Of a stretch of 64,000 nt of DNA, positions 1,607 to 57,276 are shown piece by piece (positions within the stretch are counted from its first letter, which is position 1; every line of letters starts with the position of its first letter). The notes beneath the pieces were generated by a model. The model did no database searches and had not been told where the DNA came from. It worked only from the letters and a program-made list of their open reading frames with translations. Position numbers and translations under genes: made by a program. The stretch lies in the sequence record MN871451.1, one strand, 5' to 3'.

Positions 1607-4285
1607 ATGGATAAGTCTAGTTTAAAAATTACTGAATTACCGGCGTTGTCGGTAGCCTCTGAGAATGGGTTTATTCCCATTGCCCAAGTTAAAGAAGAAA
1701 ACGACACGTATAAAACAACACTCCGTGCGTTACGTGAAAGTATCATGTTTGAGAACGCCTACTCGAGTACTGCGGCGGGTGTTTCGGCAACGGTTCCTGG
1801 CGATGTGTTCTTTGTTTACACTGACGATACTAAAGAGCATGTTCAAGGCTGGGTTAACAGTGCCGGTGGCGCCACCCCGTTATTGAATGCTAATAGTGAA
1901 CAAATCACTTACGGTACTTACGCGCTGTTGAATAAAGCTCTGAAGAATAAAGGGGCGATTGTACAGTGGGTTTATAATGGCGGGTTAAGTAACGGCGGGG
2001 AGCAAACCTTCACGGTTCCTTTAGCGGGGAATGTCGCAGTACAGGAAGTGTACGTCGATGGTTTGCGTCAGTTTAAAGACGTAGGTTTTGAATTAGTTGC
2101 TGGCGATATGTTGAGCTTTAAACTCGCTACACCAGTAAAAGAAAATCAAACCGTAGTAGCGATCTGTTTTGGTAGCGATGACATTGAGAAAGTCAACGAA
2201 GCGTTGCTCAGTCTATTTAGCGGGCCGACAGGTGCTGCAAATATCGGAATGGCAGCAGGCGGCACCGTAGAGGCCGCCATAGGCGCGCGGGTAGCTACTG
2301 CTGATTTAAGTAGCGTCTATGGAGCAGGGCTGGTCGGTACAGGGAATTACGCTGATCTTCGCAACTATACGGGTTATGCAAGCACGTTGTCTCTTTACGG
2401 TTACAGCACCGCCGGTGATGGTGGGGAAGGGATTTTCGATCGACAAAGCGTAGCTGGTAGTAAAACAGATGATGACTGCGTTCATCTTGTTGATAAATTA
2501 GGCAGACTTTGGAAACGTCGAATCAATGGGAACGTAGTGAAGCTCGCCTGGGCAGGCGTTAAGAGTTACGACCAAACCACCGCACCCCAAGATACCGCAT
2601 TTAAAAATGCATTGAAAGCAGCCGGACAACTCTCCTCTAACGGTTACCCGCAATCGATTATTACCGGGTTAGATAAAGGCGTGGTCTACCTTGCTCAGCG
2701 CCATTATATTCGCTGTGGAACATTCCCTGAATCTCTGTCGTGGATTCTTCCAACTAATTCCGGCGATCGTTTCGGTATTACGGGGCGTTATGCGTTAGAT
2801 CAAGGGGCGGGTTGGTTTGTGGTGCAAGCGAACCGTCCGCTGTTCGATATTGAGATTGACAACACCTCGCTGACATTCCAAGTCAATAATTACACCACTG
2901 CACAGATTGCTGGCTTGGTGGACACTAACTACGCGTTACGACTGGAAAGTATGGTTAACGCCCCGGATATTAAGATATCGGCAGGTGCTTACGCAGGAAC
3001 CGTACTTTACTCCTTAGGGAAGTCTAATTATACCGATGTAACAGCGAAGTGGCCAGATCTTACCGTCGTCCTACCGTCCATTCAGAATCTTGGTACATTA
3101 AGGATGAATAACAAAACAGTGGGTCGCGGGTTCTATCTTCGAAACACTGGTTCAGGCTTAGGTAAAGTTGAATACCTTTGGGAGCAGAATAATTCCCAAG
3201 CTTCCGTTCTGAAAGAAATGTACGATGTAGGACTAGAACATTACGAAGACTTTGTCCCACCGCTGCTGGCGACAGGTGGATTGATTATTGATACTTGCGG
3301 AACAGTAACGATAGGAAGTCTGTTAGTAGGTTCAGGCGGCGGTCCTCACGTCAGAATTTGGGATACTCCAGCGATCACTATCAACAAGATCTTTGGTGTC
3401 CAAGGCGGCCCGACTCTTGCCCAAACCCTCCCCGGCGCGTACTGTATTGAAATCTGTAACTCCCGTGTTTCAATCGGCCTTGTTAATGCGTATTATCCTG
3501 GCGAGTTTATTCGCATGGGCTACAATGCTTACGTTGGCATTGCCGATATTACGGGCTGGTATATGTCAAGAGTGGTCTACGTCACTAACGATACGACCAA
3601 GTTACAATATACCGGACAACGCATTGGTCAACCTAATGATACTGGTATTGTCACAATTTCGAAAGGGATCTTCTACAATCTCGATTACTACGCTGGAGGT
3701 TACGCAGCGCAACCTGTGTTCTACGTAGACGCAACTGTTCTTTACGGGAAAATGACGCTCGATAATATCGAATTCTATAATACCCATTCTGGGTGGACTA
3801 ACCTCACCGAAGATCAGATGTACATCGTCCGTGTAGACAGTCCTAATCCCAATTTCTTCTTTAGTACTCGGAACTGTAAATGGGACGATAATAATTTTAA
3901 TTACGTCATTTACCTTAAGCTACAAAGTCAACTGGCGTATTTCCAGAGCGCACAAACAAGCTACTCACGTATTCGATATGGGGACGGGACACAATCATCT
4001 TTTGGAATGCGGGACGCTACCCATGTTGATTTGACGACAACCGCACTACCATTAACAGGCGTTGACTACGTCTATAATTATCGTCGCGCGGGTAAGTACC
4101 ACGGTGATTTGACTGTCCCTTCTGGTGGTACATGCGTTATCAAAGTGAACGACCAAATATTGTACAATTATACAGCCGCGGGTACTTACCCGTTGAACTT
4201 GGTGCTGTATTACCAAGAAAGGGTCAACATTACGATCACCGGCGCAGTCACGCTAACGAACTCGACGTGGCGTTATACGGTATAA
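1607..4285 (+). CDS. Tailspike / depolymerase with a T4 gp10-like (XD3-type) docking module
   Basis: 892 aa. aa ~118-190 (WVYNGGLSNGGEQTFTV...VYVDGLRQFKDVGF...LATPVKENQTVVAI) resemble the XD3 module of CBA120 TSP4 / G7C gp66. Next come a typical tailspike N-domain (YSTAGDGGEGIF...DDDCVHLVDKLGRLWKR), a QDTAFKNALKAA beta-helix cap and a beta-helix body. Confidence 0.85.
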   Translation: MDKSSLKITELPALSVASENGFIPIAQVKEENDTYKTTLRALRESIMFENAYSSTAAGVSATVPGDVFFVYTDDTKEHVQGWVNSAGGATPLLNANSEQITYGTYALLNKALKNKGAIVQWVYNGGLSNGGEQTFTVPLAGNVAVQEVYVDGLRQFKDVGFELVAGDMLSFKLATPVKENQTVVAICFGSDDIEKVNEALLSLFSGPTGAANIGMAAGGTVEAAIGARVATADLSSVYGAGLVGTGNYADLRNYTGYASTLSLYGYSTAGDGGEGIFDRQSVAGSKTDDDCVHLVDKLGRLWKRRINGNVVKLAWAGVKSYDQTTAPQDTAFKNALKAAGQLSSNGYPQSIITGLDKGVVYLAQRHYIRCGTFPESLSWILPTNSGDRFGITGRYALDQGAGWFVVQANRPLFDIEIDNTSLTFQVNNYTTAQIAGLVDTNYALRLESMVNAPDIKISAGAYAGTVLYSLGKSNYTDVTAKWPDLTVVLPSIQNLGTLRMNNKTVGRGFYLRNTGSGLGKVEYLWEQNNSQASVLKEMYDVGLEHYEDFVPPLLATGGLIIDTCGTVTIGSLLVGSGGGPHVRIWDTPAITINKIFGVQGGPTLAQTLPGAYCIEICNSRVSIGLVNAYYPGEFIRMGYNAYVGIADITGWYMSRVVYVTNDTTKLQYTGQRIGQPNDTGIVTISKGIFYNLDYYAGGYAAQPVFYVDATVLYGKMTLDNIEFYNTHSGWTNLTEDQMYIVRVDSPNPNFFFSTRNCKWDDNNFNYVIYLKLQSQLAYFQSAQTSYSRIRYGDGTQSSFGMRDATHVDLTTTALPLTGVDYVYNYRRAGKYHGDLTVPSGGTCVIKVNDQILYNYTAAGTYPLNLVLYYQERVNITITGAVTLTNSTWRYTV

Positions 4286-6164: not shown

Positions 6165-7892
6165 ATGAACTATTATTACATTGATCCTACCGTATCAGTG
6201 AACGGTACGGGGACAAAAGACTCACCATTTAAAACGTTTTCTGCATTGATTGCACAAGGTTTCAGTCACCCTTGTACTATTGCACTAAAAGCAGGGACAA
6301 CTATTTATGAGAACGTTAATTTTGGCTTAACCTCTTTGTACAACACAACGGGGACCATGTCTTATATTACAAGTTATGGGACTGGACCAAAACCAAAATG
6401 GATTAACACAGACTATTTTAAAGCTGCCACTGCGCTCGATGGGTATAGCTATCGTGCAATGCATTTGACCGCACGTAAGGTACAAAGCGTTACCGTCAGC
6501 GGAATAGAGTTTTATGCCCGAAACAATCTTGTTTCGGTCGATAATAACAGTAGCTGTTTTATTTGGTTTGAATTGCCACCGGTAACTGTGGAAACTGATG
6601 TCGACGTATGGATTGATAATTGTAAATTTATTAGCGATCCGATTGGCAGAAGCGGAAATCATAAAGACTATGATTCCGCCGTCAATATACGTTTAGATGG
6701 TGCCGCCACAAATAGGGCGAATGTTTTTGGTGTCAGAAATTCTTCATTTTTCAATGTAGCGAGATCCATTAACATCGTGGGGAACCATTGGAAAGCAGAT
6801 GATATTACTGACAACTCTAAAGGGACGTATTATTCTCGCGGGGTCAAAGTAGAGAATATTGAGATGACAGGAATCTCAAAAGGAGGCTGTCAGTTTGCTG
6901 GCGTGGAGTCTTTAAACTCCGCCTACGTTGTGGACAAATATCAGTCAGTCATGCGGAATATTACGTATTCAAAATACCGATGGGATAACGCGTTAGAGAA
7001 CACTGAAACGCTATATGCCGATGCGGGGTTTTGGACATGGCGTTGTAATCGAATCATGATTGAAAACATTTTCGGCGGTGGTATGCACCCTTCGGTTACC
7101 GATAATGAAATCATTGATTTTGATTACTGTACGTGGGATTCGGTGGCAAGAAATATCATTGGCTTCAACAATGGCGCCTCGATTCTATTTATGGGCAATT
7201 CTTCTACAAGTGTACAAGGTGGAGCACGAGCGGCGTACGCCCCCTATTCCGGCACTTATACACAGGCGCAATGGTTCTATGATCGAAGGAATGGCCAAGG
7301 TAACAATGTTGTTGAGTTTTCGTTCTTTTTCAATGACGGTATTCAACGATTACCATATCCTTCTTCCGGTTACGACTATTGCACCAACATTCGTTCTGGT
7401 AACATTAATTACAACAATGTGGTCAGGAACTGCGTCTTTATTGACACCGTTTCTCGAACCAGTAAATACCTCGCTAGTAATAATAATTTCCCGTTGTTAC
7501 AGGGTGAAGTTCCTCGATTAGTTATTCAGGACTCGGTCTATTACGCCAGATATAATGACGGTTTAAATATTCTTAAACCTATAACAGACACGGTCAATTA
7601 CAGTAAAGCAGCCACTGTTTTAACTAACGTTGTTGCTTTTTCACAAGTATGGTCAGCAGCTGACATTACAGCCGCCGCTGCCGCCGTGCAATTAGCAGGA
7701 ACGTGCACCAATGTTAATATTACCGATCCTAAAATCGGTTATATTCCATCTCAACCACCAGTGTCCGTTGCAAGTGCAAGAAAGATTAAAACTATGCCAG
7801 GTACTGTTTTGAAAGGGTCGGGATCTAATACTACCACCACCGATATCGATGGGAATTTTATTAATGATATTTGGTGGATGAAAATTACTTAA
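6165..7892 (+). CDS. Right-handed beta-helix glycan depolymerase (pectate lyase-like)
   Basis: Starts YYYIDPTVSVNGTGTKDSPFKT, a typical lyase/DUF1565-like start. Beta-helix rungs follow (IDNCKF, VRNSSF, VENIEM, MIENIF, VRNCVF). No obvious anchor domain. Confidence 0.75.
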   Translation: MNYYYIDPTVSVNGTGTKDSPFKTFSALIAQGFSHPCTIALKAGTTIYENVNFGLTSLYNTTGTMSYITSYGTGPKPKWINTDYFKAATALDGYSYRAMHLTARKVQSVTVSGIEFYARNNLVSVDNNSSCFIWFELPPVTVETDVDVWIDNCKFISDPIGRSGNHKDYDSAVNIRLDGAATNRANVFGVRNSSFFNVARSINIVGNHWKADDITDNSKGTYYSRGVKVENIEMTGISKGGCQFAGVESLNSAYVVDKYQSVMRNITYSKYRWDNALENTETLYADAGFWTWRCNRIMIENIFGGGMHPSVTDNEIIDFDYCTWDSVARNIIGFNNGASILFMGNSSTSVQGGARAAYAPYSGTYTQAQWFYDRRNGQGNNVVEFSFFFNDGIQRLPYPSSGYDYCTNIRSGNINYNNVVRNCVFIDTVSRTSKYLASNNNFPLLQGEVPRLVIQDSVYYARYNDGLNILKPITDTVNYSKAATVLTNVVAFSQVWSAADITAAAAAVQLAGTCTNVNITDPKIGYIPSQPPVSVASARKIKTMPGTVLKGSGSNTTTTDIDGNFINDIWWMKIT

Positions 7893-7911
7893 TCTCGATT
7901 CTTTTTCACAT

Positions 7912-7929
7912 CTATATTACAAGTGTGAA
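7912..7929 (+). promoter_or_regulatory. Phage early promoter (CTATATTAC-N5-TGAA)
   Basis: Contains the phiKZ early consensus TATATTAC; one of eight copies of the motif; intergenic. Confidence 0.7.
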
Positions 7930-8050
7930 GAGGAAATAAGACACCCTCCGATTACTCCTATTTAACCGTTTCTCACAGTGCCGGTTAATAACGAGACATT
8001 CATTTTAATTTATAAGTTCAGGGACTTCGGTCCCTGTCTTATTTCACCTT
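7925..8050 (+). ncRNA. Candidate structured small RNA or regulatory leader
   Basis: Lies between the promoter and a UUCG hairpin/U-tract; no ATG-started ORF. Perfect 11-bp complement between 7933-7943 (GAAATAAGACA) and 8035-8045 (TGTCTTATTTC). Internal stems at 7962-7968/7982-7988 and 8021-8025/8030-8034. Confidence 0.55.
8019..8045 (+). terminator. Intrinsic terminator-like hairpin
   Basis: CAGGGAC-ttcg-GTCCCTG followed by TCTTATTT. Confidence 0.65.
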
Positions 8051-8062
8051 TAAGGGTCAACT

Positions 8063-8308
8063 ATGTTTACTCCCCGTATAGCGCTCTTAGAGAGCCTACA
8101 AGAGACAATATCATTCGTCCCTGACGAGAACCTAGCTTTATTAAACGAAGCCGCACTGTTGCTCTCAGAGCTTCTCCCGCCGTGGGACAATAAAGCCGCT
8201 TACATCACCCCCGTAGAAAACGCACTCACTGGCGCCCATCAATTCGGTAAAATCGTAGAAGATCATTTCTACCCTGCCGAAGACATCCTGAAAAACAATA
8301 TAGACTAG
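8063..8308 (+). CDS. Hypothetical protein
   Basis: 81 aa; AAGGG SD-like motif upstream; ends at a terminator. Confidence 0.65.
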   Translation: MFTPRIALLESLQETISFVPDENLALLNEAALLLSELLPPWDNKAAYITPVENALTGAHQFGKIVEDHFYPAEDILKNNID

Positions 8309-8347
8309 AAAGGAAAGGGGACTAACCCCTTTCCTTTCTGTGTTCTT
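8307..8347. terminator. Bidirectional terminator between convergent genes
   Basis: 14-bp stem AGAAAGGAAAGGGG-actaa-CCCCTTTCCTTTCT between 8063..8308(+) and 8348..8560(-). Confidence 0.75.
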
Positions 8348-8560
8348 TTAAGCGTCGATCGTGTCTACTACGTGCAGGAAACCGTCGGTGTCTTTGGCCA
8401 GAAAACGACCGATTGCTGGTTTATGTTTCTGGACAAACCAATCCAGAAATGTTTCGTTTGCCCCGTCTTCGAAAATGAGCGTGACCGCATTCGGGTCAAT
8501 TTTACTGCGGGTAATCTCAACAATCTTTTGCGCTGTGGTGGGAATGATTGAATAGTTCAT
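8348..8560 (-). CDS. Hypothetical protein
   Basis: 70 aa; fills the gap between the terminator and a divergent gene; one of only two credible minus-strand genes. Confidence 0.6.
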   Translation of the reverse strand: MNYSIIPTTAQKIVEITRSKIDPNAVTLIFEDGANETFLDWFVQKHKPAIGRFLAKDTDGFLHVVDTIDA

Positions 8561-8681: not shown

Positions 8682-9011
8682 ATGCAGGTTATTACAAGAG
8701 AAACGATTCTCAATGTGTTAATGAAAGAATGGCAAGAAAAGGTGGGTCGAGTACTCTTTAAACTCCGCGACACTTACCCTGGTAACAACTGCGATTTACT
8801 GGGACGACAACTCATTGTTGCACTCAATCTGAAAACCGGCACATCCGGAATGTACAACGGTGTTCTTTACAACGTGGTTGGAAAACTCACCAACGACACA
8901 ACTCTGACGCTTTACTTTATACAACCCCATGCGGCGACTGAGCTGATCCCTGTCGATCTGACTGTCGTTGACGCACTCTTTATTAAACGCACCCAGGAGG
9001 ACTGGAAATGA
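8682..9011 (+). CDS. Hypothetical protein
   Basis: Probable start ATG 8682 after AAGGAAGA, within ORF 8574..9011. Confidence 0.7.
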   Translation: MQVITRETILNVLMKEWQEKVGRVLFKLRDTYPGNNCDLLGRQLIVALNLKTGTSGMYNGVLYNVVGKLTNDTTLTLYFIQPHAATELIPVDLTVVDALFIKRTQEDWK

Positions 9012-9415
9012 CAAATCGCACTATCCTGAAATTCAGTACCGACGAAGAGACTTTCGAAGTCATCGACAACGACGGCCGTCCGGTTGACCCACTCGACCTT
9101 TCTGAAACATTAGAAAGTGTCAACGAACAGTTAGGGTTTGAACTCTATAAAACGGATGTCAACGATAAGACCGCTGACGGCGAAGAACTCACGGTGGTTG
9201 CCGTTACTGAGAATGACTCAGGGGCGGTGACCGAAACGCTGATCGAAGAAGGGAACAACGTCTTTGCTGCTACACTGGCTGAGAAAGGCTGGTTCATGGA
9301 AGAAGCTGACAACAAGATCATCGATGAACTTGACGACAGCGAGGAAGAGGATTGGGACGACTACGACGATGACGATTACCAATCTGTACCGGAAGACTTC
9401 GAAGACGATGAATAA
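9008..9415 (+). CDS. Highly acidic protein
   Basis: 135 aa, about one third D/E; tail LDDSEEEDWDDYDDDDYQSVPEDFEDDE; ATGA overlap with the upstream gene. Confidence 0.8.
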   Translation: MTNRTILKFSTDEETFEVIDNDGRPVDPLDLSETLESVNEQLGFELYKTDVNDKTADGEELTVVAVTENDSGAVTETLIEEGNNVFAATLAEKGWFMEEADNKIIDELDDSEEEDWDDYDDDDYQSVPEDFEDDE

Positions 9416-27720: not shown

Positions 27721-27770
27721 CTTCCTCTCTCCTTCGGGAGAGAGGAAGGTTCTATGTTCTCTTTTTCTTT
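27721..27770 (+). terminator. Terminator hairpin
   Basis: 12-bp stem CTTCCTCTCTCC-ttcg-GGAGAGAGGAAG. Confidence 0.75.
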
Positions 27771-27787
27771 TGGATTTGTTTTCAAGT

Positions 27788-27805
27788 CTATATCACTTAG
27801 ATGTA
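27788..27805 (+). promoter_or_regulatory. Phage early promoter (CTATATCAC-N5-TGTA)
   Basis: Motif copy directly after a terminator. Confidence 0.7.
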
Positions 27806-38742: not shown

Positions 38743-38907
38743 ATGGCAAGAACCAAACGCGGTTCTAAGGCTCAAAGTCAAGAATTCTGGAGCGCCCGGC
38801 CAGGTAATCCAACAATCCCCGGTCCATACTCTAAACTCTTGACTCACCGCGCTGAACGTCGTATCAGTAAAAAGATCGTACGTCAGGAACTCAACGATTT
38901 AGACTAA
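38743..38907 (+). CDS. Small basic protein, 54 aa (not in the ORF track)
   Basis: GAGGA SD; MARTKRGSKAQSQEFWSARPG...LTHRAERRISKKIVRQEL; followed by a strong terminator. Confidence 0.75.
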   Translation: MARTKRGSKAQSQEFWSARPGNPTIPGPYSKLLTHRAERRISKKIVRQELNDLD

Positions 38908-38910
38908 GCT

Positions 38911-45966: not shown

Positions 45967-46003
45967 AAAAGAAAGAGGGGTCATTCCCTCTTTCTTTTTT
46001 TTT
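45967..46003 (+). terminator. Intrinsic terminator
   Basis: AAAAGAAAGAGGG/CCCTCTTTCTTTT followed by a T-run. Confidence 0.85.
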
Positions 46004-46023
46004 GTTTCGATTCGTTTTAAAGC

Positions 46024-46041
46024 CTATATCACTTGAGTGAA
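46024..46041 (+). promoter_or_regulatory. Phage early promoter (CTATATCAC-N5-TGAA)
   Basis: Motif copy after a terminator; nearly identical to the 16173 copy (CTATATCAC[T/C]TGAGTGAAGGTAA). Confidence 0.75.
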
Positions 46042-57161: not shown

Positions 57162-57164
57162 CGT

Positions 57165-57182
57165 CTATATCACTCTAGTGTA
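57165..57182 (+). promoter_or_regulatory. Phage early promoter (CTATATCAC-N5-TGTA)
   Basis: Motif copy, intergenic, followed by a three-hairpin leader. Confidence 0.7.
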
Positions 57183-57276
57183 GAGACAACATCTCTACAC
57201 TTTATATCTGAGAATCTAAAATTCTCTTATCTAACGTAACGGGCCACTAACTGGTCACGAAGAAGGAAACTGTACG

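Follow-up and report, generated by a model that had tools for sequence, protein, structure and literature searches.

The short RNAs that phage phiKZ derives from its 5′ UTRs are abundant and, to our knowledge, none has a known function. Seventeen such RNAs, made by termination inside 5′ UTRs, have been proposed (Putzeys et al. 2024, PMC10914365). Northern blots confirmed two of them (~71 nt and ~141 nt), and one site showed >90 % termination alongside products of read-through (PMC10914365). In phiKZ-like jumbo phages, early genes are transcribed by an injected virion polymerase (PMC7598289). The early promoter motif of phiKZ is given as TATATTAC where Ceyssens 2014 is cited in three later papers (PMC7598289, PMC5312081, PMC7058600), and the early motif of 201phi2-1 is TTTRARR-BTATATTAC-DWHDGTG (PMC7058600). 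Transcription starts 6 nt downstream of the consensus element in phiKZ and phiR1-37, and the start rule for AR9 is motif-(6N)-G+1 (PMC5312081).

The element described here lies in a 64,000 nt stretch of DNA from GenBank record MN871451.1. This whole stretch is referred to as the window, and all positions are those of the window. Like the phiKZ short RNAs, the element belongs to a phiKZ-like jumbo phage, has a terminator <250 nt after a promoter and before a gene, contains no ORF and includes a structured region with a sequence conserved among relatives. It differs from them in that no sequence similarity was seen beyond the promoter motif, the host and the genera are other ones, and the transcript is predicted. 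In addition, the Klebsiella phage element is conserved across three genera and has a late tail-fibre gene on one side and an early island on the other.

Source phage and relatives

Klebsiella phage KpLz-2_45 (Siatvirus, ~297 kb) and its sister isolates match the region with 100 % identity, and MJ359 and LPKP23 match it with 96–97 %. By blastn, the detectable similarity to FBKp24 and Centimanus (both Maaswegvirus) is confined to window positions 7885–8002. GenBank entries MN871447–MN871453 comprise several near-identical isolates named 'Serratia phage Kp...'. Their stated host is Klebsiella pneumoniae, and most are unannotated.

The annotation of FBKp24 includes split RNA polymerase beta/beta′ genes (gp068, gp069 and gp082), together with gp083, which is homologous to the nuclear shell protein, and gp094, which is a tubulin. 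Because FBKp24 has these genes, Siatvirus and Maaswegvirus can be assigned, on gene content, to the phiKZ-like, nucleus-forming jumbo phages. The multisubunit RNA polymerase that accompanies a phiKZ-type early promoter is thus recorded in the annotation of this relative, the window itself covering 64 kb only.

In MJ359, LPKP23 and one wastewater contig, homology sets in precisely where the tail-fibre gene ends (7882–7898), and the tail-fibre genes upstream differ. As the homology starts at this point while the upstream genes differ, the element marks the exact place where an exchangeable tail-fibre (depolymerase) cassette ends on the right. The tail-fibre protein (gene 6165–7892) did not match any family in Pfam or PHROG scans.

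Searches of IMG/VR, JGI metagenomes and GTDB genomes for further homologues recovered only the known isolates and chance matches. Public sequencing runs matching the region were wastewater and food metagenome contigs with a depth of 1–11, and are probably DNA. Only three clades (Siatvirus, Maaswegvirus and Moabitevirus) were available in the collections searched, and covariation outside the terminator is nearly nil. Because the searches of IMG/VR, JGI and GTDB gave no new homologues, the power to detect covariation is low. No transcriptome of Siatvirus, Maaswegvirus or Moabitevirus was found in the literature searched.

Promoter, leader and terminator

Direct reading of the sequence gives CTATATTAC at 7912–7920. 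There are eight copies of CTATATYAC in the window, compared to 0.55 expected, and all are on the + strand and precede + strand genes. The extended consensus of this family in the window is TTTyAnnnTCTATATCACnnnAGTGaAg, namely a T-rich part followed by TCTATATCAC and then AGTGAAG. The motif fits the published motifs of both phiKZ and 201phi2-1, and the promoter is invariant in the alignment of Siatvirus and Maaswegvirus. Sixteen bases (TCTATATTACAAGTGT, 7911–7926) are identical to a site in phiKZ (GenBank accession number AF399011.1, 257561–257583) upstream of PHIKZ283.1. The same weak match to the promoter segment (23 nt, 91 %, E = 7) was obtained with dozens of phiKZ-like Pseudomonas phages.

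The family shares with phiKZ-type early promoters a conserved AT-rich core of ~10 nt, a T-rich part upstream and GTG downstream, and its members are repeated on the coding strand before small-gene operons, with the 16 bases identical to one phiKZ site. The difference is that, for the promoters of Siatvirus, Maaswegvirus and Moabitevirus, the start and the early timing are predicted. The early promoter motif that a first-pass annotation of this DNA had placed at 7912 is present, and its identification as a genuine phiKZ-type early promoter motif is supported by the sequence comparisons. Since the published starts lie 6 nt after the motif, the predicted first base of the transcript is G7927 or close to it.

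The order of parts is the tail-fibre stop codon (7892), the promoter, ~118 nt free of ORFs, a terminator with a UUCG loop (T1), a ribosome-binding site (RBS; 8052) and an 81-aa ORF (8063). This order is unusual, because at other copies of the motif in the window the terminator comes before the promoter (27739 then 27788; 45972 then 46024). The terminators in those two places (27739–27796 and 45972–46032) are strong, have a long T-run and lie directly upstream of the early-promoter motif.

Direct reading found no ATG in 7893–8062. The sole ORF in the interval, a GTG-started 48-aa frame at 7978, retains just 12 codons in FBKp24. A small ORF on either strand was considered and rejected, as the longest frames in the conserved block have 4–10 codons and the 48-aa frame is broken in FBKp24. 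The stretch from 7927 to ~8045 (~118 nt, within the <250 nt of the phiKZ class) includes no ORF of at least 10 aa preceded by a Shine–Dalgarno (SD) sequence, and the comparison with relatives supports a non-coding interval. The description of an interval with no ATG-started ORF that ends in a UUCG hairpin and U-tract before the next gene was therefore accurate.

The T1 hairpin has the make-up of an intrinsic terminator, with seven pairs (five G–C) and a UUCG loop followed by TCTTATTT. Read as RNA, GGGAC-UUCG-GUCCC is followed by UCUUAUUU. The stem is extended by pairing of AUAAG (8012–8016) with CUUAU (8038–8042). The span of T1 also holds the 3′ arm of an 11-bp helix (8035–8045) that is considered below. 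Comparing Siatvirus with Maaswegvirus, the stem is CAGGGAC/GUCCCUG versus GUGAGGAC/GUCCUCAC, and three pairs are changed on both sides. These changes are compensatory, and G–U pairs are consistent with the + strand only. In Moabite and Totoro, another stem and another loop take the place of T1, and the T1 equivalent is annotated as a terminator in FBKp24 and Moabite. The comparisons support T1 as a conserved terminator with a compensated stem. The U-tract of T1 is interrupted in all clades which, by Escherichia coli rules, would fit partial termination. The features of the region are listed in Table 1.

Table 1. Features of the predicted early unit and of the start of the downstream island
Feature	Position	Strand	Basis
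Early (virion-RNAP-type) promoter, TTTTCACA-TCTATATTAC-AAGTGT	7903–7926	+	Motif family, phiKZ match, invariance in relatives
Predicted transcription start (G, 6 nt after motif)	7927	+	Rule from phiKZ, phiR1-37 and AR9
5′ hairpin SL1, GAGG/CCUC around loop AAAUAAGACAC	7930–7948	+	RNAalifold consensus, FBKp24 MFE, alignment
11-bp end helix, 5′ arm (GAAATAAGACA)	7933–7943	+	Perfect complement of 8035–8045; in MFE of this genome
Single-stranded linker with second 'anti-SD' tract (CUCCU); AYU-ACUYYUA-YUUAAC partly conserved	7949–7961	+	Alignments
Central hairpin SL2, CUC..UUAACCG [13-nt loop] CGGUUAA..GAG	7955–7995	+	MFE, RNAalifold consensus
Variable linker	7996–8011	+	Diverged between genera
Intrinsic terminator T1: A-tract AUAAG, stem CAGGGAC-UUCG-GUCCCUG (8019–8036), interrupted U-tract UCUUAUUUC	8012–8045	+	Terminator scan
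RBS (AAGGG) and 81-aa ORF (8063–8308), first gene of small-gene island	8052–8308	+	ORF reading
Strong two-way terminator T2 between convergent 81-aa and 70-aa (8348–8560, − strand) ORFs	8306–8340	.	Terminator scan

A probable small early transcription unit

We consider it probable, with moderate confidence, that the element is a small early transcription unit which gives a leader or short RNA via premature termination, as in the 5′UTR-derived short RNAs of phiKZ. The phiKZ-type early promoter, directly after the stop codon of the late tail-fibre gene, would be read by the virion RNA polymerase. The RNA would start at ~7927, would be non-coding and would contain AUAAGACA as the conserved loop of a small 5′ hairpin, then a short single-stranded stretch that is also conserved, and a second hairpin. 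After ~118 nt, the polymerase would meet an intrinsic terminator with an interrupted U-tract, situated 17 nt before the start codon of the first island gene and 6 nt before its RBS. Most transcripts would probably stop at T1, producing a short early RNA. Because T1 precedes the 81-aa ORF, transcripts expressing this ORF must read through T1, and a fraction probably does so and continues up to the terminator at 8306–8340.

As T1 lies between the tail-fibre stop codon and the 81-aa ORF, the late tail-fibre transcript must end there as well. The element would then be the 3′ UTR of the tail-fibre gene, an insulator, and the leader of the island with attenuated entry, all in one. The accumulation of a discrete short RNA and the partial nature of termination are inferred. 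The RNA may act in cis (attenuation or stability), may act in trans via the conserved loop, or may have no role other than in stability and insulation.

T2, which closes the unit, has a perfect 15-pair stem and was detected on both strands by the scan. The four proteins of the island did not match any Pfam or PHROG family. The best conserved gene of the island is the 70-aa ORF, with 83 % amino acid identity to Maaswegvirus and 45 % to Moabitevirus. A 135-aa ORF (9008–9415), also without a family match, has a strongly acidic C-terminus (D/E runs) and, speculatively, may encode an early protein of the DNA-mimic or anti-restriction type.

Conservation of the unit in three genera

The block at 7903–8003 is 88 % identical to FBKp24 and 92 % identical to Centimanus, compared to 63–77 % nucleotide identity for the neighbouring genes and 62–73 % for other local intergenic regions. 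The mean identity of the whole window to FBKp24 is 71 %, and the block is in the 92nd percentile of 100-nt windows. However, many coding 100-nt windows reach at least 92 %, and the conservation of the block is raised, not extreme. Among seven early-promoter intergenic regions compared, the block ranks second and only 57162–57276 is more conserved. In the alignment of the Klebsiella phages, conservation runs to about +77, collapses in the linker and returns in the terminator. As it reaches about +77, further than any promoter, it is not explained by the promoter alone.

The region at 57162–57276 is a 112-nt leader after another copy of the early promoter (57165), and is the most conserved non-coding early leader of the window (91–97 % identical to FBKp24). 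It opens with a 9-bp hairpin (GUGUAGAGA/UCUCUACAC) and further hairpins follow. Two other highly conserved 'intergenic' stretches, 38744–38908 and ~1298–1507, are small ORFs missed by the 60-aa cut-off. They encode a basic 54-aa protein (MARTKRGSK...) and a 69-aa protein annotated in KpLz-2_45, respectively.

The same promoter–leader–terminator unit is present at the same place in FBKp24 and Centimanus (Maaswegvirus), and directly after the tail-fibre gene in Moabite, Totoro, 2050HW and Kodama (Moabitevirus). The Moabitevirus unit consists of TCTATATACC, then GUGUGAAUAAGGAGAUAAGACACC, hairpins and a terminator, whose loop in Totoro is once more UUCG, followed by an RBS and a TTG start, and it heads an island that holds homologues of the 81-aa and 70-aa ORFs. 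Moabitevirus phages of Serratia and of Pectobacterium encode the homologues of the 70-aa ORF (45 % identical). For the 81-aa ORF, the homologue is Moabite gp205 (3239–3445, − strand, of the Moabite segment compared), which shares the motif SxVPDENL...PPW and was missed by tblastn at E below 1e-3. Four unrelated small genes are located between the leader element and gp205 in Moabitevirus, and the unit therefore appears to be tied to the head of the island and not to one gene. Using the covariance model R1, which includes Klebsiella phages only, the Moabitevirus copies were found at E = 9e-4 to 0.05. The retention of the unit at the same place in three genera is thus supported by these comparisons and, as in the phiKZ class, relatives share it, with 88–92 % identity between two genera and a recognizable unit in the third.

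The same data bear on the explanation that needs no dedicated RNA function, to which we give a minor but appreciable chance of being correct. Here, T1 is simply the terminator of the late tail-fibre operon, the early promoter upstream of it drives the 81-aa ORF via a leaky stop, and the conserved 5′ block is made up of the promoter, the initial transcribed sequence and ordinary 5′-UTR stability hairpins. Part of the conserved 5′ sequence (GTGAAG/AGG) does belong to the consensus of the promoter family, and the interruption of the U-tract in all clades also speaks for this explanation. The leader at 57162–57276 lacks an internal terminator and is even more conserved, indicating that conserved leaders are not specific to this site. 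However, this explanation has to accommodate conservation that extends well past the promoter, and a promoter-before-terminator order that is kept in three genera though the reverse is the norm in the same genome. It must also accommodate a unit that is still intact at the head of the island in Moabitevirus, where four genes have been inserted downstream.

Folding of the leader RNA

The minimum free energy (MFE) of the predicted RNA from 7925 to 8050 is −31.9 kcal/mol (z = −3.55), and only 1 of 200 shuffled sequences folds as well. The minus strand has a less distinctive fold. The versions from all clades fold more stably than shuffles (z = −2.8 to −4.8). The MFE structure of 7925–8050 contains the three helices described in the first-pass annotation, and in this genome each can be read directly. 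TTAACCG (7962–7968) pairs with CGGTTAA (7982–7988), GGGAC-TTCG-GTCCC is at 8021–8034, and the 11 bp at 7933–7943 are the exact reverse complement of TGTCTTATTTC (8035–8045). A perfect inverted repeat of at least 11 bp is found in 10 of 507 126-nt pieces of the window (2 %).

The 11-bp end pairing, which would close the fold, is neither conserved nor compensated. In the Klebsiella-phage alignment, six pairs are invariant, one changes from G–C to G–U and four are broken in Maaswegvirus or MJ359, with no compensated pair. The helix is absent from Moabitevirus and from the RNAalifold consensus. Its invariant core, AAUAAG/CUUAUU, overlaps the tail of the terminator, which has a nearer partner. In this lineage, the helix may form after the RNA has been released.

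The structures shared by the consensus and the clade folds are SL1 with its loop, the central hairpin, and the terminator extended by pairing of the A-tract with the U-tract. The core of the SL1 loop is kept in all three genera, and in Moabite and Totoro the stem is longer (UGAAUAAGG/CCU-AUAUUCA). In SL2 of FBKp24, one C-to-U change keeps the pair as U–G, which fits a + strand RNA only. Moabitevirus has a different, longer hairpin at the place of SL2, and the central hairpins of the Klebsiella and Serratia phages show no clear homology. A structured non-coding RNA driven by a promoter, as originally proposed for this interval, is plausible and conserved, but the 11-bp closing helix and the anti-SD and switch mechanisms attached to it are not supported.

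A search of the whole window against Rfam at the gathering threshold gave no matches. With permissive settings, the best sub-threshold scores were 18 bits against cut-offs of 47–59, with L20_leader at the top (18 vs 58.7). CRISPR repeats, tRNA anticodon arms, 6S RNA and put RNA were compared by eye only, and were dropped as none matched. The put-type antitermination RNA of HK022 and the leader are alike in having two hairpins just downstream of an early promoter.

A more ambitious reading makes the RNA an early riboregulator that is conserved among the nucleus-forming jumbo phages of Enterobacterales (Siatvirus, Maaswegvirus and Moabitevirus). It would be produced by the virion polymerase within minutes, and its targets, reached in trans by the SL1 loop and the adjacent single strand, would be an RNA or a protein of the host or the phage. 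We regard this as improbable.

In the window, sequences complementary to the conserved loop show no enrichment (10 matches versus 13.6 expected). Target prediction using RNAduplex against the gene starts of the window and FBKp24 returned only unrealistic long-loop duplexes, with no outlier.

Anti-SD tracts, switching and DNA-level roles

RsaE/RoxS-type sRNAs carry unpaired C-rich motifs. Positions 7942–7960 were correctly reported to read CACCCTCCGATTACTCCTA (CACCCUCCGAUUACUCCUA in RNA), with the tracts CCCUCC and CUCCU, and these are unpaired in the single-sequence MFE structure of this genome, as they are in C-rich or anti-SD RNAs and in mimics of the 16S rRNA 3′ end. This had led to the suggestion of a trans-acting early sRNA in which two unpaired CCUCC-like tracts bind SD sites, for host shut-off or phage timing. 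We consider this very unlikely, as a pairing function is at odds with how the tracts vary. The first tract is the 3′ half of the SL1 stem and is paired with GAGG in the consensus fold. In FBKp24 and Centimanus (Maaswegvirus), its CCUCC is CCUCG. The second tract, CUCCU, is CUCUU in FBKp24 and CUUUA in Moabite, and both tracts are missing in Moabitevirus (CACCUAUAUUCAUUCACUUUAAC). Conserved, unpaired CCUCC-like motifs, as expected of anti-SD or C-rich sRNAs, were thus not found. Two such pentamers (CCTCC/CTCCT) lie within 20 nt of one another in three cases in the window versus 1.25 in shuffles, which is not above chance, and over the + strand as a whole they tend, if anything, to be rarer than expected. 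An RNA with general anti-SD activity would, moreover, bind the phage's own ribosome-binding sites.

It is equally hard to credit a switchable leader, in which the 5′ arm at 7933–7943 competes for the U-tract of the terminator, or another riboswitch-like attenuator. The promoter, structured leader, terminator and gene do have the layout of leader attenuators and riboswitches, and CUUAU in the U-tract can pair with either a distal AAUAAG (7936–7941) or the proximal AUAAG (8012–8016). However, both of these pairings involve the U-tract and neither touches the terminator stem. In intrinsic termination, the decision falls while the polymerase still encloses the U-tract. The 11-bp helix cannot influence termination, because the U-tract leaves the polymerase after the decision, and the helix is broken in relatives with no compensatory change. 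Known leader attenuators also differ from this leader in that no alternative antiterminator pairing was found here. By eye, no upstream sequence complementary to either strand of the terminator is apparent, and no riboswitch or leader in Rfam matched above noise.

A DNA-level element, either a conserved junction for exchange of the tail-fibre cassette or a protein-binding site, would suit the start of homology at the tail-fibre gene end in MJ359, LPKP23 and the wastewater contig (where the upstream genes differ), but is scarcely likely given that the genera differ by 8–12 substitutions with no fresh identical patch, that changes keep helices as G–U pairs on the + strand only, that the terminator is compensated and that the block begins with a promoter.

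Implications

The attractive anti-SD reading of this locus is corrected here as unsupported. What the analysis provides is a candidate short RNA in clinically relevant Klebsiella phages, with a position and architecture that are kept across three genera and two host genera. The conserved 8-nt loop, the conserved linker and the leaky-looking terminator make up a small, defined target for tests that distinguish action in cis from action in trans. If the riboregulator reading were true, no early sRNA of a phiKZ-like phage would have been functionally defined before this one.
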